A DNA stretch of 64,000 nucleotides from Macrostomum lignano (taxonomy: Eukaryota). A program made the translations under genes and the position numbers. The stretch is taken from the NCBI GenBank assembly GCA_002269645.1, contig NIVC01000434.1, positions 372,001 through 436,000 on the forward strand, read 5' to 3'. The notes under the pieces are model-generated. The model was not told the origin of the DNA. It saw nothing but the letters and a program-made list of their open reading frames with translations, and did no database searches. Positions within the stretch are counted from its first letter, which is position 1; each line of letters begins with the position of its first letter. Positions 35,259-53,903 of the stretch are shown here, one piece after another.

Positions 35259-37174
35259 TTATGACATTGATGAAGGCATGTCAGCGAGAGCAGGATTAGT
35301 AAGATCGCCGTCAAGTTCGCGATAAGCCTCGTTGAAGATGACCTCACAGTGGCATGGTGTAGACATGATACACTGCAGCTGGTAATTATGACCCCAGCCT
35401 TTCACAAAGGACAGACGAATGGAGCACAGTGCCTGCGCGCGGTTCAGGGCCTCGCGCGGGGGCCACCGGCCGCGCAGCTGTTGCACTTTTTCCAGAAAGC
35501 TATGCATGGAAAAAACCAGCAGCTTGTCGCCTGCGAATGGTTGAAAGGCGGGTCAAACTATTTGCTATAATTTTTATTGTCTCTATCTTCTTGAATCATT
35601 GGGTTGAATAATTGAATCCTCTGCAGTAAGGTATTTAAAACTAGAATTTTTGTCCAAAATTTTCTGTTGAAATCTATCACGGGGAGCACTATAAAAGTTC
35701 CAAGTGCACTTAAACAGGAACTGAATGTTACTTTCTAGCCACACATGGAACTTTAAGCAAGTCCTACTGTCGTAAAGGAGGACCTTTGATCTCGCAGTCC
35801 TCATTGTTTCGCAGGCAATTGAATTGGAAATTTCTAGGACATACATGTACTTCACTTCAGAAGAATCGCTAGAATCACCTTAATATGTGCTGTAAAAACG
35901 GATAAATTAAAAAGCAAGCAAAGCTACACAGGCTCTGCTCAATAAGGCCAATTCGTTCTCACAGTCACAATAGGTTAAATATAAAACAGCTAGCAGGCTG
36001 TCAGACAAGGAGAGGCAAAAGTGGTGCAGAAAACCGAGGTGGATAGCCCAAGAAAACCGCATGAGTTTGTAAGACGTGCTAGTTTATTAATAGAGAGACT
36101 GCATACTGATGACGCATTAGCTGTCAGCTACGAGAGCATTAGAGAGCATTTGCTTTAGCTACAGACTGCGAGCAGTGCAGAGCCGGTTTCAATAAATCCC
36201 GCTGAATAGAAAGCTGAGCACAAAATTTATGGAAACATTAACAAAATGATTTAAGGCTTAAAATTTGAAATTAATCAAGTTATCAGCCCTCCAAAGCGAT
36301 AAAAAGCATGCTCAATTAGCACTTATTGGTTTTGAGTAGGATAATGAGATTTCTTTTCTTAGAAAGTCTTCAAGGGGCTGTCTTGTCTCCATGGAGATAA
36401 AAGCTTTTTACTATTCCAGCACCAAAAACAGATGAATAAATATTACTCATTCTAATTTACATTCATATGTCCTAAACGAAAAATGCCTCTCGAGCATTTG
36501 ATGTGCTTCTAATGCGAAACTGCCTGTGTTCCTGTCTCCGTAGCATAATTTTAGCGTAGAGCCGTAGAGCCAGCTGCCAAATATTTTCTATTCGAAATAT
36601 TTTATTTTCTAAGAAACGAAGATCTCCGTCCTTCTAATGAAGCCGTCCTTGATAATATTATATTATATATTCAGAGAAGAAAAGTCGAATTAAACTTACT
36701 GCCAACATCCAATCGTACTACTACCCCAGGATTGCTGTCGTAGTTGATGCACGGAGCCTGAAGGAACACCGGACTATTAGACAGGTTGGTTAGAAAAACT
36801 TCGCCAGTATCCGCGTTTCGTTGAATATGAACGCCTCGGCCGATCAATCGTCGGACACTCTCAACCTCGCGACAGCGGTTCACATTGCTGAGGGCGCCGA
36901 CAGAAAATCGATTGGGCGCCAGAGGACAAGTGTACCCATCGATGGTGAACTCCGGCCCAGAAGCGTGATAACTCTCGCCTACTTTGGTCTTCAACTCGTA
37001 ATATTGGACGCTGCACCAAGGCGCAGCTGTAGTGGCCGCAGGCACAAAAGCGGACAGTGGCATGGCAAACTGGCCGCCAGGCAGGAAGGCCGACACAGGA
37101 GCATGCGTTTGAAGATGAGAAGCCGCCGCAGCCGCAGGCTGCTGCTCTTCTTGACTGCTACTCGGTTGAGTCAT
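35259..37174 (-). CDS. SMAD-family protein with MH2 domain only, 248 aa, C-terminal SSMS
   Basis: Exons 37174-36700 and 35530-35259 (A|gtaagt...ttcgcag|GC, phase 1, frame closes). WCSVQYYELKTKVGE, IDGYT, RFSVGALSNVNR, IGRGV, IRLSFVKGWG and STPC motifs; ends MPSSMS. Confidence 0.9.
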
Positions 37175-38323
37175 GCGTTGAAAATCTTAGCATGCAAGCA
37201 AAAAGTGCTGGAAATAAAAATGAAGTCCAATTTTCAAGTTTGCAAATCAAGAATGCGCAAAAGATTATCAAAATAACATATACAGTGTCAATAAGGTCAA
37301 AACGTTATCAGACACGGCATTTTTTCAAGGTGTTAAAAATTTGACGTAGCAACTGCCGTACAATGCTTTCTGACGCATTTAGACAACAAAATGGCAGTTT
37401 TGGCCATAGAAATATTGTTTGGAAACCAGCTTCGAAGTGAGAAATCGGCTTCAAATCCTCGGCCTAATTGGCACTCTATACTACAGAAGTTCTGTGCTCT
37501 ATACTGAAGACTCCGCCAAAATGATACACTTGAAAGTACGAGAGTAAATAATTTATGGAAAGCCTACACGTTCAATCGTAGCTTAGAAGCTTCGGAACTT
37601 AGGATTCTGAAATTACTCTTTTCTCGTTGAGGTAATATAGATGGGCAGAGTTCGGGTTAGGTAGCTAAGCAGACAGCAAAAAGAATAACGCCATGAATGG
37701 CCGTAAAAGATATGAATAGAGGCTAAGATAACTTTAACAAACTCCACCCCCACAACAGCTGAAATTCATAGTTAATTTTCATTGAGAATGCAATGGAATT
37801 CAAAGAATGCTCAGAAACCGAATTAAACAGGCAAGAAGCTGTTTAAGATGACTCAGAACTTGAGTCTATTATTAGCAATAGAGAATTACTACGCTGCGCT
37901 TTTAAACCTATATAACTAAGACCAGCCTTTGACAAATACTGATATTTGTTTCGGCAGATATTGTAAGACAGAAAATACAAAGGTTTGCAAGCGACGAGCA
38001 ATCCACTTTTCATTTCTTTAGTTTTCTCTCCTACAGTTTTGAAGAGGAATGCGGGTGGTGTGTGGAAAATGAAATACATACGAAATAGGAAGGCTGCACA
38101 CGCACGCAAGAGAGGGCAGGAAGGAGACTGACAAGCGCGAGTCATAGCACGCGATGGAAGTATATGAAGAGGCTATAAATACCACGCATAAGCGTGCCAC
38201 ATCGCACCACCGTATCAAAACTACAACGGCATCTTAAAAATAGACGAAATAGAAAGTGGCAGAACTAAACGCTGGGATTCTCAACAAAAACTTTTGCAAA
38301 CCTATCCAGAAAAATCAATCCCT

Positions 38324-39235
38324 ATGACGTCATCGTCCGCCGTGGACTTAGTAATTTCGTTCGACACAACTTCCTCAATGCACACCGTTCTGGAGGCAGC
38401 TCGTCGCGATCTCGGTTTAATTTTGCGGTGTCTATTTAAAGCAGGTACAGATTTACGAGTCGGCCTCATTCTACACGGAGACTACGGTGACGAGTACGAG
38501 ACGCGACTATATCAGCCAACCGAAAGCATCAACCAGCTCGTCAAATTTCTTAAAGAGGCACCTAATACTTGCGGTCAAGATTACCCGGAGTGCTATGAGC
38601 TGGTGTTGCACCAGGCGGCAACAAAAGTGCACTGGCGTAAGCAGCCGGGGGTTTCGCGTTTGTTGGTACTACTAGGAGATGCAGTGCCACATGAGCTAAA
38701 CAGCAAACGCAATAAGTATCACCTGGACTGGCGCAATGAGGCGCGAGTCCTAGCAAGTATGAATGTATCTGTCTACTGTGTGGATTGTGGCGGAGTGGGC
38801 ACAGGATTTTACAGGTTTGCGCAAGAGCTTAGCAGCATCTGCAACGGCGCTGCAGTACCCTACCGCGGCATTCGTGAGCTACGCCACCTGCTAAAGCAAT
38901 TGCTTCTGCTGCTTCAGCAACAACCTACACAACGGACAATAGCGCATAATTCAATCGAGCGCCGATACAGGAGCTATCACTGCAATTCTCAAAGAGCGGA
39001 GAATTCACCAACTACAACATGCTGCTTTGCGGAACCAGCGCTGAAGTCATCAGTAAAAGCAAACCTTGGAAAGTGTGTTCCGCAGAGTATGACAACGCCG
39101 AATGAAGTAGTCTTGGCTTTGGCTAGAAGTGGAACAGTTGCCATCGGCAAAACAATGCACCTGGGCGCCAAACTGCTCATCAACCTGACACTGCTGTTCC
39201 TACTGTACTCCTTGTACGTAACCGCGTGTTTTTAG
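38324..39235 (+). CDS. Intronless von Willebrand factor A (vWA) domain protein, ~303 aa
   Basis: DLVISFDTTSSM (MIDAS-like), LRVGLILHGDY, DYPECYELVLH, LVLLGDAVPH. Divergent from the SMAD gene. The C-terminal part is less certain. Confidence 0.8.
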   Translation: MTSSSAVDLVISFDTTSSMHTVLEAARRDLGLILRCLFKAGTDLRVGLILHGDYGDEYETRLYQPTESINQLVKFLKEAPNTCGQDYPECYELVLHQAATKVHWRKQPGVSRLLVLLGDAVPHELNSKRNKYHLDWRNEARVLASMNVSVYCVDCGGVGTGFYRFAQELSSICNGAAVPYRGIRELRHLLKQLLLLLQQQPTQRTIAHNSIERRYRSYHCNSQRAENSPTTTCCFAEPALKSSVKANLGKCVPQSMTTPNEVVLALARSGTVAIGKTMHLGAKLLINLTLLFLLYSLYVTACF

Positions 39236-40153
39236 ATGAAAAAACGGAACAGTGCCAATTGAACAGTGCCAATTGAACAGTGCCAATTGAACAGTGCCTA
39301 AGCTTACAAAACAGCAAATTATTGTCACAATCGCTTGATGATACCGGTATTTCTACTTCTTTTAACTTCAATGCAATACTATGAAGTATACATTTAATCT
39401 GTTTTTGCTGTGATTTGCAGTGACCTAAACCAAAAATTGGAAGTGCTAAACATTACAAGTTGATTATGAAGTTGACCTGACGCACCAATTTAATGAATAG
39501 CTACGTAAAATTACTAGTTAGACTACAGTTCCTAATTTCTTATATACATGTTCTAAAATCGCAAAAATAAAATAATTAATAAAAGCTATTTATTCTGCTT
39601 CAAACGCCAGAAATCCATATAGAATATTATTAATTATTTTGTAAGACGCCACAGAGGGTTAAAGAGCATCAAAGTACTTGGTAATCCGAATATTAGATTA
39701 AAAAAATGAATCATGCGACTTGTGCAAGAGAAAAATTTAATCACAATAGAAAGTCTAAAGAGCGAAATAATCAAGAAGACTGCAAATGTCAGAGGGACAG
39801 CTGATACAGTGAATGAAGAGGCAAAGTTACTGTAGTCTGTCGTAATAAACTGTAATTACTGTTATTTTCACGAAATTTGAAAGTATACAAAAAACAAGTA
39901 CTATACATTTATTTCAACGTAAGAAGTGTGTCAGCATTGTTTACAGTTTCCAAGCTTGGCACAATTGAGATCAAAAACCAATTTCTTATAGTAATAAAGA
40001 ATCAACATTTCCGATCTATTTGTAGACAGACATTAAAAGTCACAAGACCGAACACACGCTCCTACATGAAGCTACAAAAAAGAGAATTACATACAAAGGC
40101 AGTATGTAACAGCAGACCTGAAACCTGAAGAAAAAAACTGTCGGGTTTAAATA

Positions 40154-41055
40154 AGAAATTATTAATATTGGTTTTTGCATGCCAAGTGAGACACTTTTCA
40201 AGCAATCTGAGACCGAATAGCAAAAACACTATTGTCTATGGCCACCACTCGCTGCAGCCCAGCTTTTTGGGATCGCCTTGCAAGCAAAGTGAGACATTTT
40301 TTCAAGCTAAGTGAGAACCATATTGAAAACAAAGGGGTGGTTTTACGAAATTACAAAATAATGTACTGTCGGAAACTATATATTTAGAAAAGGATACGCA
40401 GGAACACAACAAAACAAGCGGTACAAAAATTGTTGATAATGTTATAAGCGTTCAAATAAAGGGTTGCATGTTGATACACTGAGCAAACTTTTGAGTGCAG
40501 TGGAGCTCCCAGCCTGCGATTTTGTGCGGAGTAATGACATGCAGCGATTCTCTTCCAAGCCGATCCATCAGCATGTATCGCCAATCATCTCGTGTCATGC
40601 CTGGTGGGCAAACGTTTTCCTCAGCCACGATTGCGGGCTCTACAAGGCGACGCTTAATCTCATTCTTAAGAGCGCTGTGCGCCATCTCCACGGGATTCAA
40701 AAACGGCGAGTACGCCGGTAAAATTTGCAGACGAATGAGATCCTCAAACTGCTCAGGTATCTCAATCCCTTGGTGAAAATTTGGACCATCGAAAATGAGT
40801 AACCATCTTCGACGGCATTGACCAGGCGCTCTCTATCCTCGTTGCTTGTTAGACGCAGTTGATTTGCCATAGCCCAGCCTTTGTTTTCAATATGGTTCTC
40901 ACTTAGCTTTAAAAATGTCTCACTTTGCTTGCAAGGCGATCCCAAAAAGCTGGGCTGCAGCGAGGGGTGGCCATAGACAACAGTGTTTTTGCTATTCAGT
41001 CTCAGACCGCTTGAAAAATGTCTCACTCAGCATGCAAAAACCAATATTAATTTCT
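40154..41055 (-). mobile_element. Internally deleted Tc1/mariner-IS630 superfamily transposon
   Basis: ~180-bp TIRs (~40154-40337 and ~40877-41055). N-terminal remnant LTSNEDRERLVNAVEDG is joined out of frame to PAYSPFLNPVEMAHSALK (YSPxLNPxE DDE motif). Exact ends approximate. Confidence 0.85.
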
Positions 41056-41644
41056 AAATAAAGAGAACTGGTACAGAGTCACTATGACCAACAATGCTTA
41101 TCCATATACGCAACAATAGAAAACAACAAAATTCATCAATTGATCTTAAAAATATCAAAATATTTACACAGCTTAGACTGTAATCAGAATAGATTAGAAC
41201 CCATATTCTAAATCTGATTGCTGCATTGCTGCTATCGAATGAAAAAACCAAATCATCATATTATTCGTAAGATTTCGATCAAAATTATTTCTTTTCGGGA
41301 AAAATATCGAACCGAGAACTGACGCCACATGCATTCGCTAGTAAGTCTCTGTAGTTGCCTGCCTATAGGACGTGACGTCAGCTGATACAAAATTGAAACT
41401 ATATGCTTTAGAGTAAATATTCGCGGAAGGATTGCGGGCACCCTGGTGCAACGCCTTCGGCGACATCGTATTTATCCCGAATAGAAACCAGTGCTGAGGC
41501 AATTCTGCCCCCTACGAAGCGTACTTCAGTAGAGAGAAATGAATGTTAGAATTCACACATCGAAAAGTATAAATATATCGCTACTTGTGACTGCTAGTTT
41601 GGAAAGAAAACTATGCGAACAATTTTTGCACAAAGATGTAACTG

Positions 41645-44600
41645 CTACACCTTAACAATGTCCAGAGAAAGGGACAGCGGCAATAGAGGGCAGCTAGAGT
41701 CTGCAACACGAAAAAGCTGGCCCCAGGTAGAATCAGAGCCCGTTTCACTTGGCAGCTGGCGAATCTGCGCCCGGACCGACAGCCAGCGAGCGTCATTGGC
41801 CACCTCGCCAGAGTAGAAGCTCTCCTGAACAGTGACGCTGGTGCCAGTATCGCTTGACAGGCAGGTCTCCACTACAACTCCGCAGTGATTGGCTGCCAGC
41901 GACAGCATAAGTCGCAGGTTGGCCAGACGGTAGTCGCCGCCCAAAGCGGATAAATCGACGCGCCATTCAATACTGCCGATTTCGTTAGAGCCGCCGCGTT
42001 CGCGGCAAAGAAAGGCAACCTTTGGAATTTTTACACGGAGTAATTGTGAATTACCTCAGATCAAAGTAATTTATGATCTGCATACACAACTGGACTTGAC
42101 TAGGTAGAGTATAGGTGGGGATTTTTTATTTTGAACAGCAAAGGGTGCTAGTATCTGAGGCGCCAACCATGGGGTCCCTGGTTGAAACAAGCCTCAGTTC
42201 TACATAGCCTTTCTTGCTGGGCATGGCCTTGCAACGACGCTGATTACAGAATGGTCACAGAATATCACAGGCCACAGTCCTTAAATACATATACACTTAG
42301 TTTAAAACATAGCCAACTGCCATTCAAAAACTACCTTCCTCCCTGGACAGCCGGGATTGTCCTCTAAAACGCGGCGCAGGTTGCTGGTAGAAAAGGTGCA
42401 ACTGCGCCAACCGATGGTTGCCGAATGATCATCGCTAGATCTGGTGTACTTATCGCTGAATATGTCGTAGGTCAGGGCCAACTGACCGCTGGCTAATTCG
42501 CGTTCCGTTGGCGTGATAACGTACCCACCAAGGCCGCTGTCGCCAGCGCCATCAACATTGGCAGCTTTTCTTGACTGATCGATGGTGCTCAGACTGGATG
42601 CAGCATTGTCAGACGCACTGCCCGATGCAGACGATGAAGATGCTGGCGCAGGCGTGTTTGATGACAGTGCACCCGGTGCTTTTGCCGCTGAAACTGCTGA
42701 TGAAGCGCTTTCGTCAGTCAATGAGTCCGGTTGCAGCTCCACTATGAAACTGAATGGCGAGCCTCCAGATCTGCGATGGTGTTTTATTATCAGAAAATTT
42801 GTCTCAACAAGCTAAAAATGGAATCGAACCCAGGCGATGCTGGTCTACATCAAGACTAAGACCAAGGCTAGACTCAATTAGCCAGGTTAAACAAAACTTC
42901 GAGTTGTATAGCGTGGCGTAATTTCTTTGCCCGCATGGCGTAATTTCTTTGCCCACAAAGCAAGCTTATCGCGCCACTCTCCCTACCGTCTACTTTTTAG
43001 TAGAAAAACTCTGGCATAGTTTCAAATTGTAAGCGCCTCTGCGGAACGCCTTCGGCGACATACTCACGATCAGCGCTAAGGCGATTCTGCCCGTTCCGCG
43101 GACTTCTGAACACATGCAAGCAGGCCAATACTGTACACAGGCACTGACTTTCTAATAATAGTCATAGCTCTGCCCTAGTTTACACATTAGTTATCCCTAA
43201 GTAGAATGGCGAGTTGGACTGCACATTGCCGTACCCGTCCAGTGAGCGGCGAAACAACTGACACTTCTGCCATGCCAAGTCGCCCTGGCCGCCAGCGAGT
43301 CGAGCCGTGACTCTCACAGATTTGGCGCCGGCGCCCTGAGTCTCGAAGCGGAAGCATTCAGCTTTTGACTCGGCGACTTGGCTTCCATCAAGTTCCACCG
43401 ACCATCGAACGCTAGCCGAGCTATCAAAAATCTTGGCCTCGGCGTTTACACAGATTTTGCCAACGGTGAAGCCGCTGCCAGCGAGGTCGATCAGCCAGGA
43501 AGCCTCGCCATCAGTTCTTGATGGACAGCCCTCTGGCCGGCAGAGATAGACCATCTGCCAGTCTGACTCGAGCTTCCGTGCCAGCCTACTGCACCGGTTT
43601 AAGCAGGCATGCCATCCAGAAATGGTATCGACATTGTTCCCGGCTGCGCGCTGATAGACATCCTTAACGGGATCGTAGGTGAGGCAAATTTTGCAGACAG
43701 CAGCTTCATAGCTATTCGGTGTAAACTTGAAGTCGCGTCTAGACGTTTCGTTGGAGCCCGCAGTGGTCGAGGTTTCGCCGCGGTTCAGGCGCCAAACAAG
43801 GGAGCCGCTCTGACGGCCCTGTAGTTCAGCAGAGTTGGTGCCGAGTCGACGCGGCGTAAGGAACTCAACAATTTCGCGAACGCGTCGAAGGCGCAGAAGA
43901 CGTTTGCGTTCGGTGCCCAGGTGTAGATAATCGTTCTGTTGTGTTATTGGGGATCATATGAAATATAATAAACTGTGAAAAGCAAAACAAGCAGCTACTA
44001 ATTTTTTTAGGCTGCGTATTAGAAGCAGAGGGGCACTTCAAGCGACACCCTGGTACACCCTGGTGCACTTCAAGCGACATTGTCACACAAACATTATATA
44101 ATGGGCATTACTGCCCATTCCGCCGACTTCCCTGTCACACAAGCAGACACACAAGCGCACGGATTTGTACGCAGTCATACGCACTGGAGTGTACAGCATC
44201 CCTAACTTTATTTATCGTTAGGTATGTTCCTTCGCTGTGCCTTGTGGGTTGGCCCTCAAGGGCGTTAATTGCACGAGCAGAGCCAAGCCGAGATTCTCAT
44301 TTAGCCCTCCCCCAAATAATATGACTGCACTTTGAATTGAGCACATCAGAGTGCCGCACTAGACCACTGGGCTACGCCCTCTCATTACGCATCAAGGTTA
44401 GAAAGGGACTCTTAGGGCACTGATGCGAATCAAGGCAAAAATCTGGTCCATGCACACGCTCAAACAGGGTGTACAGCGGCATTGACTTTCCCTGTGGTCT
44501 GTGAGCTGGCCCTCATGGGACTGGCAAGCTAACAACTAACACAAAGCATATGGTTAAAAAATGATTTGGCCCCCTAACCTGCAGGGTGCGCTCCAGACAA

Positions 44601-45495
44601 TCGACAACCTGATCCAACCAGATCTCATTGACGCGCCGCCTAGTCAGCAGCTGCTTGTGCTCCGCTGAATAGCGCCACGACACGTCAACAAGTTCTTCAT
44701 GCGACATGGCGAATACGAAACTAAGCGACTTCTTCCAGCCGCTCTCGTACACCAGTGGGGCATCGATGAGATTTTCGCACGGATCAACATGCAGCCAGCG
44801 CTGCTCCAGCTCGCTAAAAACTTCAACCCACACGTGGTCGGTGACGTCATAAATGAAGCGCGTATCGAAGTTAAGAGCGCGGCACAGCAAATAAAAGCAA
44901 TTAGCCCACTCTCCGCAGCGACCATGCCGGGTTTGCAGTAGCTTCTCTGGATGATTGTAGCGCGGAAATCGTTCCACACGTTGGCACCGCTGACAGTAGT
45001 GCGATTCGACCCGAATGGCGCCGTAGCGGCGCTCCTCTTCGTTAGGCGGCAGGTTGGCGGCGTTGCTGCTGGATTGGCAGTCCTGATGGCACACGCTGCA
45101 CTTGGGGCTGTTGGTCCACTTGAAGAACTCATTCTGCGGGTTAGACAGAGACTCAATAATATATATGGGTTTAAACGGTTTTAAACATCGCCGTGGAATG
45201 GGCCAGGGTAGCTCAACGATAAAAGTGTCTGACTCTGAGACCCCGAATTCTATTCGGTGCGCGGCCACATTTATCGAACGAAATTTGGCCAGAGGGTTGA
45301 CGTGCGATTCACAGCCATAAAATTGTACATGCTCGACTATTAGAAGTCAGTGCAGCTGTACACACCGTGTGAGCGTGTTTACGAGGATAGATAGTAGATA
45401 GGTGGATGGATGGATGGATGGATGGATGGATGGATGGATGGATGGACGATGGATGAATGGATAAAAAGATAGATAGATAGATGGATAGATAGATG

Positions 45496-45529
<34 letters not shown>

Positions 45530-45694
45530 AAGATAGAAAGATATATATATATAGATAGATAGAAAGAAAGATAGATAGATAGATGGATAGATAGATGGAT
45601 AGAAAGAAAGATAGATAGATAGATAGAAAGAAAGATAGATAGATAGCTAGATAGATAGAAAGATAGATGGATAGATAGATAGAAAGAAAGATAT

Positions 45695-45768
<74 letters not shown>

Positions 45769-45849
45769 AAGATAGATAGATAGATGGATAGATAGAAAGA
45801 TAGAAAGATATATAGGTAGATAGAAAGAAAGATAGATAGATAGATGGAT

Positions 45850-45884
<35 letters not shown>

Positions 45885-45919
45885 AAGAAAGAAAGATAGA
45901 TAGCTAGATAGATAGAAAG

Positions 45920-45954
<35 letters not shown>

Positions 45955-48708
45955 ACCATCGCTGCGGTTGGGCTGCAATTAAGCAGAGCAAGGAAAAAGC
46001 TAGTTGCTGGAGACCATCGATCTGGTGCAAACTTGAGTATAAATCTGTGAGCCTATAAAGCGCCAACTTGGGTGGTAGGACTTGCATGGCCAACTCTCAG
46101 GAACACGGGAAACATGGAAAAGACACCCCCCGAACCAAAAAAGGGGTCGAGGCGGACCAACTCAGACGGAGAAACATTATTTATCTGCACAAGTTTTTGA
46201 TATTGGGAGCAGCAAAATCTTGTTTCAAAACAACATTTTTTCACCGAATCAATCAGTTTTAACGCCTGTTTTAAAAATTCTTGCATAACAACTTCAAAAA
46301 GAAATGACTACCATAAAAAAAACAAAATATTACAGGAGTCGCACCTTAAACCAAGCCGTTAACTCGCACAGCAGTGCATCTCGCTCAGCTGCTGGGACTT
46401 GCGCCTCAGTCAATTGGCACCCTCCGCTGTTGCCAGCTGACAGCTGCTGGCGCACCCGCGTCCTGGCGGCTTCCTCCAAACGCGTCAAAGGTATGCACTC
46501 GCGAGCTCGGGACTAGAAGAAGCAAAGAGCAAAAATTTACTCAAACATTTCCCGCTTTCTCCCGCCTTGCAAATACATCGAACTCCGATTGTTAAGATTT
46601 TCTGTCAAAGTGAAATACACTTAGCTGGTTACCTATTTTTTTAGCTGGTCATTTGCCAGATCTTTACCAGGTGGCTATTTGCCAGAAAACCGTGTCCTAG
46701 TTGGTCATTTGCCAGACCTTTACCAGGTGGCTATTTGCCAGAAAACCGTGTCCTAGTTGGTCATTTGCCAGACCTTTACCAGGTGGCTATTTGCCAGAAA
46801 ACCGTGTCCTAGTTGGTCATTTGCCAGACCTTTACCAGGTGGCTATTTGCCAGGAAAACCGTGTCCTAGCTGGCCATTTGCCAGACCTTTACCAGGTGGC
46901 TATTTGCCAGAAAACCGTGTCCTAGCTGGCCATTTGCCAGACCTTTACCAGGTGGCTATTTGCCAGAAAACCGTGTCCTAGCTGGCCATTTGCCAGACCT
47001 TTACCAGGTGGCTATTTGCCAGAAAACCGTGTCCTAGCTGGCCATTTGCCAGACCTTTACCAGGTGGCTATTTGCCAGAAAACCGTGTCCTAGCTGGCCA
47101 TTTGCCAGACCTTTACCAGGTGGCTATTTGCCAGAAAACCGTGTCCTAGCTGGCCATTTGCCAGACCTTTACCAGGTGGCTATTTGCCAGACAATTGTGT
47201 CCTAGCTGGCCATTTGCCAGCCAGACATTTCCTAGCCGGCCATTTGCCAGCCAGACATTTCCCAGCCCAGCAAGCGGGCTAGCAGGCAATGCAGGCCATA
47301 AATAGCATGAAAAAATGAACCTACATGAAACATTAACCTACATGAAACCTACATGGCATATGCTTTACCTGCAGGCCGGGATCTTCATATTTTGGCATGC
47401 CGCTGAGGTGAGACATCAGACTAAACACGAGCTGATGATTGGTAGCCTTGGGCGACGCCAGGGCTGGAATCATGTTCACGTAGATACTGGGCAGATGACG
47501 AGAATCGGTAACTACGCGCACTAGCTGGTTGCGTATCTTGGCAACGCGAACCAGAGGTCCGGGAGCCAGCTCAAAGTACTCGCCATTGTTGCTACGTCCG
47601 GAATCGTCTGTGAAGCCCATAGCGAATAGGCACTCGATGCCGCCAGACACTGGCAGCAGCTTCTCTGACACGGTATTGCTGGACACTTTCAATCGGCGAT
47701 ATTTCTCGTCTAGCGGGTGCGCCAAGATGTTGTCCGCTATGCGCAGCAGAATGTTAGCGGCGGACCGGGCCAGCCCTGGCTCATTCTCCAGCAAAGCAGC
47801 CACGCATTCATCGAGCTGAGGTCTCAGCTGCTGAATACGGTTAATCAGTTCTAACTGGTTGAAGCCGCGCTGACGCCACACCTAGTATTGTTTTAATTAG
47901 TCATAAAATCGTTTCAAATGTTGCAGAAGTTGCAGATAGGAACGTATCGCTTTTAGATAAAAATAGCAATTTAAATTTCATTCAAAAGCAGCTTAAGTTT
48001 GTCGCTAAACAAGGCAAATATTAGTAACTTTATGACACTGTTCATATTGAATTGTTCAAGTGACCGAGATATATGGATTTTTCATCTGAAGCACATGTCT
48101 GTAGACCAATGATACGAGTGTAGTGACTGTGTTCCAACCTAAGGCTGTCATTGTACATGCTCAGGGGCAATCAGGGCGCCCCCATACCTGCTCACTGATT
48201 TAGCGCTGGCTAATGTACATTACGGCTGGGCCCAACAGTAAGCAGTTTACGTCTGCAAGTCACACCAACGGCCAATATTTTTATATAAAAAATAGCTTAC
48301 GAATTCTTTCTTACTACTGAACTAGTAGTTCATCTATTTATTTATAGCATCATTGTACGTGTAAAACTAATGAAAAGGATAATAATTTTTTTACTATCTG
48401 ATGCAATGTTGCGATTTTATGCCAAAAAACAATGCATTTACCTCCTGACCATCCAGAAAGAGAATGATAGTAGGAAAAGCGTTGACGTCGAACGACATAG
48501 CGCAAGCCTCGTTGGCGGGACTCTCGTCCGACACTAATACACCGAAGGACACGTCCGACAGGCACGAGGCCATAACGTTAACTAGCGGCTTGGCTCGATT
48601 GCACGGCTGGCACCAGGACGCGCTAAACATTATCACGACAAGATGCCCCTGAGACTCTGTGGCTATTGTCTCCTGTAGGCTAGCGGAGTTCAAAGGAATA
48701 AGATGCAT
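41645..48708 (-). CDS. NGLY1: Peptide:N-glycanase with thioredoxin-PUB-transglutaminase-PAW-PAW architecture, 1004 aa predicted
   Basis: Exons 48708-48442, 47881-47369, 46512-46345, 45133-44579, 43935-43235, 42770-42335, 42019-41645; all GT-AG, phases compatible, 3015 nt. Motifs WCQPC; PUB NILAHPLDEKYRRL...GGIECLFAMGF; Zn pairs CSVC and CQRC; catalytic GRCGEWANCF and DHVWVEV...HVDPCE; two PAW repeats. Confidence 0.9.
45385..45950. repeat. GGAT/GATA/GAAA microsatellite in NGLY1 intron 3
   Basis: Long (gata)n tract with variants; explains the spurious YLSI ORF. Confidence 0.97.
46640..47260. repeat. 56-bp tandem repeat in NGLY1 intron 2
   Basis: ttgccagaaaaccgtgtcctagctggccatttgccagacctttaccaggtggctat repeated about 9-10 times. 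Confidence 0.95.
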
Positions 48709-49039
48709 TTTGGACAAGCAGAAACATGGGGGGCATTCAGAGATTTTCTTAGCATAAAATTGAGTCATATTTTGACTGCCGAACCTACACCATTCACACT
48801 TGAAAGCCTAGATTTTTTGTCACAGCTTGTGTCACTGACATCCTGAATTTGGACTTCACATTCCAGTTTAGGTAAGTTTCATATTTATGTATAAACTATC
48901 AATATAAACTATCAATAGTAATTTTATATAACTATTGGGACTCTAGAGATAGTTTAAATACCCTGTTAAGTATAACCCTAATAATAATAAAATTAATAAT
49001 AATAATAATTATAATAATAATAATCATCATCATCGTCAT

Positions 49040-49331
49040 TGATTACACCTGCCCTAATGGGCAGATGTGCAACCGACAGCTCAGCCACAGCTATTGCGAG
49101 GCGAATCTGAAGGCTGCGTACGACTGTTCAGTCCAAGGACTGGGGTCGGCACACACATCCTCAACTACCCCAGCTAATGTTGGCATCCATTTTACAGCTG
49201 GGTGAACTGAAGAAATGCAGAGTTAAGTGTCTTGCTCAAGGACACAGATTGTCTCAAGTGGGATCGGGGAATCGAACCCCCGACCTTTCAGTCGAGGGTC
49301 CGACGCTCTGACCACTAGGCTACAACCCCCC
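49040..49331 (-). mobile_element. SINE family A copy with an AAT/CAT simple-repeat tail (others at ~52570-52794 and ~61745-61973, minus strand)
   Basis: Reverse complement matches 14209-14474, including A and B boxes and the ccttgagcaagacacttaac core. Confidence 0.85.
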
Positions 49332-49759
49332 TAAACCCTTAACTTAGGGTAACATCTTTTTTATATATATAACAAAAATCTATTATTACCAAAAGTACAA
49401 AAAGCAAGATGATGATATTTTCACAATATAAAAGGCAACTTGAAAAAGTTCTAGAATATAAAGACTCTACGCCGATTAGATTGCCTCATTATTTTCAGTT
49501 GCATATATTTCACATTAAACCATTAAGTCTAATAGAGCTAGGTGAATGGCCATCATTTCAATGTGAACTTGCAAGGCCTACACTGTATGGGAATGCAACA
49601 CTAAGCAAGCAGAAAATGTCATATAAAGCCCATAACAGAGGCCATCGAACTTCTGTTTTTTAAATGTGATGACAAGATTGACGATTCTAGGAAAATAATC
49701 GGCATTTTAATATTCACTAGGAATACAGATTAAGCTGAATACGAAAATAGCCACATATC

Positions 49760-52429
49760 TTAAGGTTGCACTACAATCCAGCCCGACTGCCACGCGTAAA
49801 GTCCAAAAACTGCGCTAGTGATTGCCAAAAATAGACCAGCATTCCGCAACACAGCGCCATCAGAACCAGATTTTAAAGAAGCGTCATCACCGCCAGCAGC
49901 ACTAGCGGAGCCGACTGCGGAAGACAGCTCGGGAAAGTAGGCCCGCTGAACGCGCTGACAAAATTCTATAAGGTTGCGGTGTTGGCGCAGCTTGCGTAAC
50001 AGAGCCGGAACTTCACCAGAGCTGAGATTGGACTGAGTTATTGGGGCTTTCAGCAGAGGCCATAGATAGCCAAATACCATGGCATCAAGGCAGCAGGGCC
50101 CAGACTCGGACACAAAAAAGCGTGCTTGGTCCAACACCTGGGACAGCTGGTCAATGCAATCAACTCCATTTGCTGTCACCTACAAATTTAAAAAAGTATT
50201 TTTTTATTGAACGATTGAAAGGAACCAATTCTAGGACGCTGTGAATATATTTTGCAGTCTATTGGTGCAAATAGCCTTTTTGCCCAGCATGACCAGCGAC
50301 GCTAATCAACAGAATAAAACTGAACACAATGTTTTAAAACAGTCTAGACAGCCTGTTTACTGACTTAATAAGTAAGAAAAACTATGCATAGCCACTAGTC
50401 ACATGTAGATATACACCTGTCTGTTCAAATCTAGCTTATATGCAATGCGCATTATAGTTAGCCTAGGCGTGTTGAAACGGGGAGAAACGCACGGCATCCC
50501 GCCTGCTGCAATATCTATGGCCAACTTCAATATGTAAAAAAACTAGTATGCATTTAAGTATCTAGTTAATGTTTCTACAACTTGTATATTTTAAAAGTAA
50601 AGCTTAGTGCTGCTTAATAATTCTTAGTATCAGTTACTATTTTTTTCCATTCGCAAAATAAGGAGTTTTGGCCATAGACAATTTTTGGATTTGATTATTT
50701 CTTTCTTTGTCTTGTGTGCTGGTGTGCTAATGTGGGGGCTCCGCCCCACACCCCCGCAAGGGGGCTCAGCGCCCCCTTGACCCCGCTTTCTTCTGACTTT
50801 GCCATAGACATTTTCAGCGGGCCGCGAAACCGACTGAATGCATTGGAGTAAATGGGATTTTACCATAGACAGTCTCAGCGGCCCGTGAAACGCGGTTTCA
50901 CGCCCGCTAACTATAACACTAATATGGATGGGGCGCATCGGGCAGAAACGAGCTAACACTCCTCGGCGCTACGCTACGCGCCTCGGCGTTTTAGCTCATT
51001 TTTGCCCTTTGCAGCCCATCAATATTGGTATATTATAATGTACAGCCAAGTCATGGTAACTGAAAAAAGCCCAATTCTTGGCTAAAAAGGATTTGAACGA
51101 TAGTCTCTGGCCGGCCCTGCCGATTTTAGCGTATGGTCCTCTCTGCGTCATTCTTTACTGTAGCCATGCCATTCAGCTGTGGCACAAGCTGCTCGCGGTA
51201 AAAAAACAAATTGATTTCTGTTGTCTATGGCTTTTTATGATTAGCCTATGACGGATCTTTGCCCCGCTGCCACGCCACACTGGCACTGACGGCCACGTAC
51301 CGAATTAAATGAATAAAAAACCAAATAGGACATGAAAAGGTATAATAGAACCATAAAAGTTGAAATAACGTGTAATCATTAATGCGCAATCTGTGACTGA
51401 ACAGTTTTGTTTATAAACCTGCAGTTCAACAGTTGTGCAGTAAGCATCTATAATGTTTTTCTAAAAAATTATAACTCAAAACTTACGAGGGCTGCAGGTA
51501 CCCTGGCGCAACACCTTCGGCGACGTTGTCTTGCAACCAGTGGTGAGGTAATTCTACCCATTCTGGTGACTCCTGAGCCCATACAAGCACGCCAATGCTA
51601 AATGCAGACACGCACACGCTCACACATGGTGTACAGCGGGCCCTGATTTTCTAATCGTCAAGCATGTACACTCTCTGTGCCTTGTGCCTTCATGACCCTC
51701 ATGAGTGCGAGCCGCACAAAAAGCCTCCGGCCAATCTATTGAACTCAAGCCATAAAAATTAATGCGACCAGGCACTGAATCAAAGCCGCGATAGTGGCGC
51801 GAGAGTCAGAGTTCACCACTGAGCCGATCCCCCCAAACCAAGCTTAAGAACTCTCCTACATATGTAGGTAAACAAGGCGATACAATTGTAAAATTTCAAA
51901 CCTGTTGAAGCAGAGCGTCTTCACTGACGCGCGCAAAATCGTAGCCAAAGCTGGCTAGCAACCGGTTTCGAGTGGCATGATGCCGGTACACCGGATACAC
52001 TAGGGAGGCTGGCAAGCCAACAGCCTCAGCAAAGGCCGGCCTAGTGACTCGAGTGTAGACGCGAGCCTCAAGCCACAATAATTGAGCAACAGCGGGCGCC
52101 AATCGGGCGCGAGTTGATCGCATCAGTGCAGTCATGCGAACCAGCTGGTCCTCGCTAAAGTCGTACTCAACACCATAGTTCTCTTTCCGTAGATAGGCAA
52201 ACAAGTGCTCAAGATTGAAGCCGCCGTTGATAGAATTGCCAGCATGACGAAGCCGGGGCAGCTCAGACAGGCGGCGCGGCGAAGTTGTGACAGAGGTGAC
52301 CAAAGCTGGCCGGTTGTGTAGCCGGATTTGCACCGGGGCGCCGGAGAAGCGGACATAGGCGAGAGAGGCTAAGCAGTCGGGATCTATGGATGCCGAGTCC
52401 CATCGGCCAGGCCACACGGTGAGTTCCAT
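49760..52429 (-). CDS. MTX1: Metaxin-1/3-like mitochondrial outer-membrane import factor, 315 aa
   Basis: Exons 52429-51902 and 50179-49760 (phase 0). SIDPDCLASLAY, LLWLE...Y..VTR, LDAMVFGYL and a C-terminal TM helix GLFLAITSAVFGLYAW. The paralogue (1 versus 3) is not resolved. Confidence 0.85.
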
Positions 52430-53903
52430 GCAAGACGATTGGTGACGGCAGAAATGTGACGACTTAATTTTTTATGTCTGATTGCGACTTAAACATTTGC
52501 GATAGCCACTAGCAGAACACACGGCTATTCGATATTTTTGCGAAGATTTTTAATAACAGTTTTCATTTTTTATTGCACCTGCCCTTATGGGCATGTGCGA
52601 CCGGCTGTTCAGTCAAACACCCTTAATTACCTCAGCTAATGCTGGCACCCATTTTTGCAGCTGGGGGGAACTGAAGCAATTCAGGGTTAAGTGCCTTGCT
52701 CAATGACACACATTGTTCCAAGTGGGATCGGGAAGTCGAACCCCCCGACGTTTTAGTCGAGGGTCCGACGTTCTTACCACTGGGCTACAACCCCCTACAG
52801 TTTCGTGAATATAGTGTCTCAGATTTATGCACTTATAATTATTTCAGAAAGGCAGATTTCCTATCATAATTAAGTGGCAAAACTACGAGCTCGTGATTAA
52901 ATGCCGTATTTAAAATCTCTGACAATCACATACGAGACATATAAGCACCTATAATCAGCTTCAAGTTAGGAAAAAGAATTAATAACTCAGAAGCAAAGTT
53001 ACTAGCCAGTATAAAACAGCCATCAACTTGTTTTGGCATATGCGCAAAATATATTTTTGATCAGAGAAATTAAGCGAAATAAGAAATTCTCTGTAAAAGA
53101 AAAAGAGGCAAGGTAGATTAAGTACATCATTTAAGCTTAGTCCAAATTTAGAAATCTACTAAGTATATTGTGATTACTCATACTTTAAACTCAATAAATC
53201 GTTCTCAATAAAGTTCTAAAACAAACTTTAAGCACAGCTGAAATTTCGATTACCTTTGTGGTACTAGATTTTATATTGACAGCAAATACAGAAACAAAGT
53301 AGCAAATTTAATAACTTACAAGACCTTTTGTTGGTTTGCATGTTGCCGGAATATTAGCAAAGGGCGCATTAGTTGCTAATCCTGAGCAACAGATCTGAAA
53401 TTCAGTTAGAGCCGCTGAGTACCTAAAAGATGCTTAGGGTTTTATTTAATAAAAACATAAATAGTATGGATAAAACTATGGATAATCTGGTAAGGACAAA
53501 GTGGCTCACAGAGCTAGTAAATATTCTTGTGACATTCGACGGGAATTGAGAAGCTCGTAGAGAAACGAGCGCTGAGTGGGGTAGCTTATAAGAGTTGCAA
53601 ATAAATCTATAATTACAAACCACATAACGATGGCATCAGATGTTATTTAATTTGTCAGTTGCTAACCGTGAATCCGAGGTGCAGTATAGATAATAGAAAG
53701 CACATCACATCACATTTATTTTTACAATAATTTTTATCTTACACCTGCAAGTTGTACAAGTTGAGCATCTGGGGACCCTGCCAATGTAAACAGTCATCAA
53801 TAACTGATAAATCAAAAGCACATACCAAAATGATAATCAATCACTAAATTATCAATGGTGTAGTATAGATTAGGCCTGCATCATGTTTCTTCGCTTATTA
53901 ATA

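Follow-up and report, generated by a model that had tools for sequence, protein, structure and literature searches.

A predicted cytosolic peptide:N-glycanase of Macrostomum lignano with an N-terminal thioredoxin domain and a second PAW domain

A gene of the flatworm Macrostomum lignano very probably encodes the ortholog of the peptide:N-glycanase of the cytosol (PNGase; NGLY1/Pngl/PNG-1, EC 3.5.1.52), in which the PUB-core-PAW arrangement is accompanied by a thioredoxin domain (TRX) and by a diverged, linker-tethered second PAW domain (PAW2). The gene lies on the minus strand at positions 48708-41645 of the window, by which we mean the whole stretch of DNA analysed, 64,000 nucleotides long (positions 372,001 to 436,000 of contig NIVC01000434.1, assembly GCA_002269645.1). 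Its seven exons yield a coding sequence of 3015 nt, which specifies 1004 amino acids (aa) followed by a TAG stop codon. The conclusion that one gene encodes all five domains, in the order TRX-PUB-TG-PAW-PAW (TG being the transglutaminase-like catalytic core), is well supported. The coordinates, junctions and 1004-aa model proposed in a first-pass annotation of this DNA were all reproduced; joining the seven segments gave an uninterrupted coding sequence, in which the peptides quoted by that annotation (WCQPC, LDGQE/VWRQRGFNQLEL, YVITPTERE..., VAFLCRERG... and QLFR) were all found.

Domain content and gene model

The first-pass annotation had called for a Pfam scan of the 1004-aa model, and the scan returned five domains, all above their gathering cut-offs. 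The Thioredoxin match covers aa 5-104 (45.6 bits, E 7.7e-12, cut-off 23.5). The PUB match covers aa 129-190 (64 bits), a region that also scores 60.7 bits against the mouse PNGase PUB structures 2hpj/2hpl. The core is matched by Transglut_core at aa 350-434 (58.7 bits) and by the Rad4-type transglutaminase family at aa 416-502 (46.6 bits). On the full protein the PAW profile scores 212 bits in two stretches. The first PAW domain (PAW1, aa 541-746) spans positions 1-196 of the 197 in the profile; PAW2, scanned alone, matches over aa 818-988 with 61 bits (E 1.9e-16, cut-off 31.4) and spans profile positions 25-184.

The residues on which PNGase chemistry depends elsewhere in the family are in place. 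In an alignment of 30 PNGases, the Cys-His-Asp triad (C389, H416, D433) and the zinc-site CxxC pairs (C328-x-x-C331, C363-x-x-C366) fall in invariant columns. The triad residues are spaced 27 (Cys to His) and 17 (His to Asp) positions apart, the same spacing as in the yeast and mouse enzymes. A larger alignment was made of 119 sequences, namely the model and its 118 best metazoan homologs (from among the best 120 of 329 full-length matches). At its columns with 95% or higher conservation the model agrees in 132 of 157 cases; by region the conserved columns matched are 11/14 in PUB, 76/90 in the core and 33/38 in PAW1. The full-length AlphaFold2 (AF2) model is confident for PUB, core and PAW1, with predicted local distance difference test scores (pLDDT) of 76-91 over aa 111-180 and 85-95 in PAW1. 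In every respect that sequence can test, the predicted M. lignano protein is a member of the cytosolic PNGase family.

The exons follow the domains closely; all coordinates of the gene refer to the minus strand of the window. Exon 1 (48442-48708) opens with the ATG at 48708-48706 and encodes aa 1-89, the bulk of TRX; by position mapping, C33-Q-P-C36 lies at 48612-48601, M27 at 48630-48628 and the cis-proline P79 at 48474-48472. Exon 2 (47369-47881, aa 90-260) supplies the final strand and helix of TRX (to aa 104, 47837), the PUB domain (Pfam match aa 129-190, 47764-47579) and a helical linker. Exon 3 (46345-46512, aa 261-316) is the helical run-in to the core; it ends in ...LTAWFK and contributes D305, L311, W314, F315 and K316, which are invariant in the 30-PNGase alignment. 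The zinc-binding and transglutaminase-like catalytic core is encoded by exon 4 (44579-45133, aa 317-501), with the zinc ligands C328/C331 at 45100-45089 and C363/C366 at 44995-44984, and with C389 at 44917-44915, H416 at 44836-44834 and D433 at 44785-44783. Exon 5 (43235-43935, aa 502-735, codon 735 being split) encodes a post-core helical hairpin and PAW1 minus its last strand. That last beta-strand, GSPFSFIVELQP (42763-42728), is encoded by exon 6 (42335-42770, aa 735-880) together with the linker (aa 750-816, 42727-42527) and the N-terminal half of PAW2 (from 42526). Exon 7 (41645-42019, aa 881-1004) encodes the C-terminal half of PAW2 and ends with the TAG stop at 41647-41645. All six introns are GT..AG, with phases 0, 0, 0, 0, 2 and 0 in order, the phase 2 junction (GG/gt...ag/A) being that of intron 5. 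An in-frame ATG at 48768 was ruled out as the start codon. Because the extension from 48768 carries a stop in a paralogous copy of the gene (L005, described below), 48708 is the start common to the copies. The window holds no further TRX, PUB or PAW coding sequence that we could find.

The junctions themselves argue that these segments belong to one gene. Exon 1 alone matches Thioredoxin profile positions 4-83 of 103 (45.7 bits), and adding the first 15 residues of exon 2 extends the match to position 100 and raises it by 5.4 bits to 51.1 bits, in agreement with the proposal of the first-pass annotation that the exon 1/exon 2 junction completes the thioredoxin fold. Reading through intron 1 instead carries the match only to position 87 (48.2 bits). 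An alignment of TRX to the PDB thioredoxin 2vim likewise crosses the junction, to residue 105 (56 bits). The first methionine of exon 2 is M177, inside PUB, and exon 2 therefore cannot initiate a PUB-containing protein alone. At the other end of the protein, the Pfam match to PAW1 ends at aa 746, within exon 6, and AF2 places a strand at aa 741-749 with a pLDDT of ~94.

Deposited gene models agree with the joined structure. GenBank entry PAA83089.1 (999 aa, partial, "hypothetical protein" BOX15_Mlig004657g2) agrees with the model at every residue from position 6 to the stop codon (100% identity) and therefore has the same six junctions; PAA50218.1 (1005 aa, 97% identical, also named "hypothetical protein") is encoded on another contig. 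The GenBank annotation of the Mlig_3_7 assembly is not ab initio; it derives from a transcriptome assembled with the genome as guide (StringTie/TACO, supplemented by de novo transcripts that were mapped), and its genes were delimited at trans-splice and poly(A) sites located by experiment (Wudarski et al. 2017, PMC5730564). Predictions from a second assembly are present in UniProt under the name PNGase (A0A1I8J5G2, A0A1I8GHQ6, A0A1I8GXR7 and A0A1I8GPF1). The caveat of the first-pass annotation that the architecture might already be annotated was thus well placed, as it is present in both databases.

Selection on the accessory domains and alternative readings

The PNGase gene is present in at least three genomic copies, and the coding sequence has been preserved among them. 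The paralogous contig NIVC01003691.1 (L005) holds all seven exons (7/7) at 96.8-99.4% identity, without indels and with the same splice sites. Contig NIVC01000081.1 (L006) holds exons 4-7, again without indels and with the same splice sites, the remainder being cut off by the contig end. Introns are 79-96% identical between copies and differ by many indels.

Substitutions between the window and L005 were counted by the method of Nei and Gojobori, with P values for the excess of synonymous changes. Over the whole gene there are 31 non-synonymous and 40 synonymous changes (dN/dS 0.24, P 5.6e-9). TRX has no non-synonymous and five synonymous changes (0/5, dN/dS 0, P 6e-4), PAW2 has four and eight (dN/dS 0.16, P 0.003) and the catalytic core has six and 13 (dN/dS 0.13, P 2.4e-5). 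Values are higher in PAW1 (10/8, dN/dS 0.38) and highest in the linker (6/3, dN/dS 0.74). TRX and PAW2 both behave as constrained coding sequence, like the catalytic core, on counts that are small.

By sequence, TRX is a recognizable member of the thioredoxin family. It is matched at E<=1e-3 by 188 thioredoxin-fold sequences of the PDB, the best single-domain match being 2vim (56 bits). In that alignment W32-C33-Q34-P35-C36 and the cis-proline loop F78-P79-T80 (AFPT) pair with the WCGPC and MPT of 2vim.

PAW2 can be traced to the PAW family by sequence and by predicted structure. A custom hidden Markov model built from 118 metazoan PAW domains scores PAW2 at 54.5 bits over positions 1-160 of 173, and the sequence matches the mouse PNGase C-terminal domain structures 2i74, 2g9f and 2g9g (E 4e-5 for 2i74/2g9f). 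The AF2 model of PAW2 has a pLDDT of 82.5, and Foldseek aligns it to 2g9f with E 4e-13, TM-scores of 0.81/0.86 and a root-mean-square deviation of 2.3 A; among PDB structures Foldseek found none close to the PAW2 model besides this mouse PAW fold. A full-length AF2 run whose alignment had no canonical-PAW rows for this region gave the same helix-plus-strand order, with pLDDT means of 41-79 over 10-residue blocks. The ~65-residue linker between the two PAW domains is Ser/Ala-rich and predicted to be disordered, with pLDDT below 50 over aa 753-817 and 10-residue block means of 24-45. As a proxy for the mannose site we used 33 hallmark positions with conservation of 90% or more in the canonical PAW domains of PNGases; PAW1 keeps 29 of the 33. 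PAW2 retains E826, Y836, Y843, R845, R868, E871, R886, W899 and the QLFR motif, and contains a five-residue insertion.

Several points weigh against reading the gene as a five-domain enzyme with working accessory modules. Transcript support for the joined gene comes via the deposited annotation and not from RNA reads. Divergence between the paralogs amounts to 71 differences, such that the per-domain dN/dS values are calculated from few events. The TRX active-site dipeptide is QP and not GP (CQPC in place of CGPC), and M27 stands in place of the buried aspartate (VVIMF against IVVDF in 2vim), which corresponds to Asp26 of the E. coli and human thioredoxins and assists catalysis. In the full-length AF2 model TRX (aa 1-100) has a pLDDT of 27-56, a low value because the alignment held no TRX homologs. 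Because the alignment behind the separate PAW2 model consisted of canonical PAW domains, that model is biased in favour of the PAW fold. Lastly, PAW2 keeps 14 of the 33 hallmark positions and is without the counterparts of K622, D626, W627, W679, the GG pair and the WQH motif (PAW1 numbering).

The two accessory domains fare differently when these points are considered. The TRX of C. elegans PNG-1 has reductase activity in vitro and is required for rescue in vivo (PMC8997433), and by analogy the CQPC domain of M. lignano rather likely reduces substrate disulfides; our confidence is not higher because the buried catalytic Asp is Met. Judged from its residues, reductase activity of TRX is plausible and may be altered. 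That PAW2 acts as a canonical mannose binder is a tentative proposition at best; likelier than a second canonical mannose site is an extra module with altered ligand binding. The first-pass annotation had combined a five-domain single gene with bivalent mannose binding. The former is upheld by the GenBank junctions, by conservation in the paralogs, by selection, and by folds and exons shared across the domain boundaries; the latter appears doubtful, because PAW2 keeps so many fewer of the hallmark positions than PAW1.

PAW2 is not a recent copy of PAW1. BLASTP aligns the two at 34% identity over 92 aa, and in a phmmer ranking of 127 PAW2 matches PAW1 stands well down the list with 31 bits, the best match having 46 bits. 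When 1.84 billion representative proteins were searched exhaustively with phmmer, no close relative of PAW2 emerged, the only strong match being its own cluster; the remainder were 13 weak matches of at most 46 bits (fragments, PAW-only proteins and a bacterial secreted protein). An old internal duplication and the capture of a PAW-only gene are candidate origins.

Among alternatives to the five-domain enzyme, the one that survives best, at a low probability, is that this form is only one isoform, perhaps a minor one, and that retention of intron 5 or polyadenylation within it yields a single-PAW enzyme in which PAW2 is optional. A suitable open reading frame does exist, as read-through past the exon 5 donor stops after 17 codons (...FRRSLDG-YGNVQSNSPFYLGITNV and a stop codon, window 43180-43234, minus strand). 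The alternative tail NSPFYLGI resembles the true last PAW1 strand GSPFSFIVEL, and the read-through tail and the start of exon 6 have the 10-mer CTCGCCATTC in common. The read-through peptide is, however, frameshifted in both paralogs (YGNVQSKSPFLLSDN and a stop codon; L005 11597-11650) and so is not conserved, the codons of exons 6 and 7 are under purifying selection, and the deposited transcript-based models on three contigs are all spliced. The intron 5 read-through may be left over from an ancestral C-terminus, or it may be a short isoform that was not conserved.

It is slightly less probable still that TRX and PAW2 are inert passengers in a real gene, a redox-dead thioredoxin-like fold and a degenerate, non-binding PAW. 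The loss of the buried Asp and the unusual CxxC dipeptide would fit such a history, as would the absence from PAW2 of 19 of the 33 hallmark residues and of any close relative among the 1.84 billion proteins. However, TRX keeps both cysteines and the cis-Pro loop, and PAW2 models as a compact domain (pLDDT 82.5). While the introns diverged by 4-21% with indels, TRX accumulated no non-synonymous change and PAW2 remained at a dN/dS of 0.16.

Hardly credible is a chimera, in which annotation or read-through transcription joined a canonical PNGase to a small thioredoxin gene on one side and to a PAW-only gene on the other: ab initio models of the ML2 assembly (P0122, P0125 and P0126) do wrongly fuse PNGase to a downstream MH2-domain gene, trans-spliced polycistrons are common in M. 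lignano (PMC5730564) and proteins with PAW as their sole Pfam match exist elsewhere (P0129, P0131 and P0137), yet it takes the first 15 residues of exon 2 to complete the TRX fold, no start codon precedes PUB in that exon, the last strand of PAW1 shares its exon with the linker and half of PAW2, the TBONE pipeline, which splits units at trans-splice and poly(A) sites, kept PNGase as one gene, and every junction is phase-compatible and kept in the paralogs.

Relation to other PNGases and PAW proteins

The single five-domain gene differs from each known PNGase architecture with which we compared it. Animal NGLY1 is PUB-core-PAW, and in C. elegans TRX stands instead of PUB (PMC9102325, PMC8997433); the first-pass annotation had given the same background for the vertebrate and nematode enzymes. 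Neither TRX together with PUB nor tandem PAW domains is described for a PNGase in these two reviews. The metazoan NGLY1/Pngl proteins (vertebrate, insect and other; ~610-720 aa) are 35-42% identical to the M. lignano protein over the common part, and have in common with it the PUB-core-PAW order, the triad and the zinc site. The 118 best metazoan PNGases, which come from vertebrates, amphioxus, a tunicate, echinoderms, molluscs and an annelid, span only ~50-64% of the M. lignano query: none of them (0/118) extends over TRX (aa 1-100) or over the linker and PAW2 (aa 751-1004), and for none (0/118) is the thioredoxin family PF00085 listed.

C. elegans PNG-1 (TRX-core-PAW) resembles the M. lignano protein in having an N-terminal thioredoxin fused to PNGase. 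In the nematode, however, TRX replaces PUB, whereas in M. lignano it precedes PUB and a second PAW is added. Because PUB is present beside TRX, the predicted M. lignano enzyme is not of the nematode architecture. Yeast Png1 and plant PNGase (core only, or core plus other N-terminal folds) have the transglutaminase-like core in common with it and, unlike it, are without PUB, PAW and TRX (PMC9102325).

The best non-self matches of PAW2, at 37-46 bits, are to proteins of Patiria (P0129), a tardigrade (P0137) and a bacterium (P0128). PAW2 matches these PAW-only or tandem-PAW proteins no better than it matches canonical PAW domains, and the matches therefore point to no specific relationship. The PAW-only and tandem-PAW proteins that we scanned gave no Pfam match to a catalytic core. 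P0128 was rejected as a PNGase, being a secreted bacterial protein with two tandem PAW-like domains. It is 707 aa long and encoded on Logan metagenome contigs (L001 7731-9854, also L002, L003 and L004). Its sole Pfam match is PAW (91.7 bits in two stretches), and inspection by eye shows a hydrophobic segment resembling a signal at the N-terminus and a tail resembling PEP-CTERM. Neighbouring genes encode MlaE/MlaD, a PAS histidine kinase and an N_methyl/SBP_bac_10 protein. The PAW domain is generally considered eukaryotic.

In the literature that we searched there was no mention of the gene identifiers Mlig004657, Mlig018337 and Mlig023858, nor of phrases for tandem PAW domains, and no paper on flatworm PNGase/NGLY1 was found among the 12 best-ranked matches. 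The architecture is thus already deposited in GenBank and UniProt but undescribed in the searched literature.

Genomic neighbourhood and biological meaning

Gene order is common to all copies: a Tom37/metaxin-like gene, PNGase, and a gene for an MH2-domain protein. In the window the Tom37/metaxin-like gene lies upstream at ~49770-52600. Downstream, at ~35800-40200 on the minus strand, PAA83088.1 encodes 248 aa with an MH2 domain (the SMAD-like C-terminal domain only). The PNGase-MH2 fusion models of the ML2 assembly are UniProt entries of 1233-1286 aa.

The introns contain repeats of several kinds. Intron 2 carries a minisatellite (window 46642-47220; 56 bp x 10.3 copies, 98% matches) whose length varies between the paralogous contigs, and intron 3 carries a (GATA)n microsatellite of ~142 copies (window 45386-45950). 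Related short blocks (...gggcagaat.gcc...atgtcgccgaaggcgtt...) were seen by eye at 43000-43130 in intron 5, 44040-44170 in intron 4 and 41440-41530 in the 3' flank; their recurrence suggests a small dispersed repeat or an element resembling a miniature inverted-repeat transposable element. Stretches resembling tRNA (...tagcctagtggtcagagcg...ggttcgattcccc...) were also seen by eye at window 49250-49330 (minus strand) and 44340-44375, and are perhaps remnants of a tRNA-derived short interspersed element. ARAGORN called no tRNA genes in 40000-50500.

The roles of the PNGase domains may be read from the family. Through PUB the enzyme would dock onto the C-terminal tail of p97/VCP, with PAW1 it would grip the glycan at its high-mannose part, and with the core it would cleave the GlcNAc-Asn bond of retrotranslocated glycoproteins. 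To these TRX would add reduction of substrate disulfides, and PAW2, a folded beta-sandwich kept by selection, would serve as an extra, altered ligand-binding module. We infer the disulfide reduction and a second glycan site, and the divergence of PAW2 weakens the latter.

An evolutionary scenario that we consider unlikely, though not negligible, is that TRX was gained independently in flatworms and nematodes, or that the flatworm TRX-PUB arrangement is an intermediate from which nematodes lost PUB, and that PAW2 was separately retooled for a ligand other than high-mannose glycan. If this were true, it would suggest that selection has repeatedly favoured enzymes in which disulfide reduction is coupled to deglycosylation on p97, and the retooling of PAW2 would make this a three-activity enzyme of endoplasmic-reticulum-associated degradation.

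The M. lignano protein is a lineage-specific variant of a well-known enzyme. Three things limit its significance: it amounts to a known enzyme that has gained domains, it has so far been seen in one species, and databases already contain it. NGLY1 is nonetheless a disease gene in humans, and its accessory domains are little understood to date; in C. elegans TRX is required for a neuronal phenotype and PAW is not. The field describes TRX as a nematode-peculiar replacement of PUB, and a natural enzyme in which both occur together shows that the two are compatible. A PAW2 that is constrained yet diverged could reveal other ligands of the PAW fold, and since RNA interference and transgenesis are available in M. 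lignano, the contribution of each module can be dissected in this animal.

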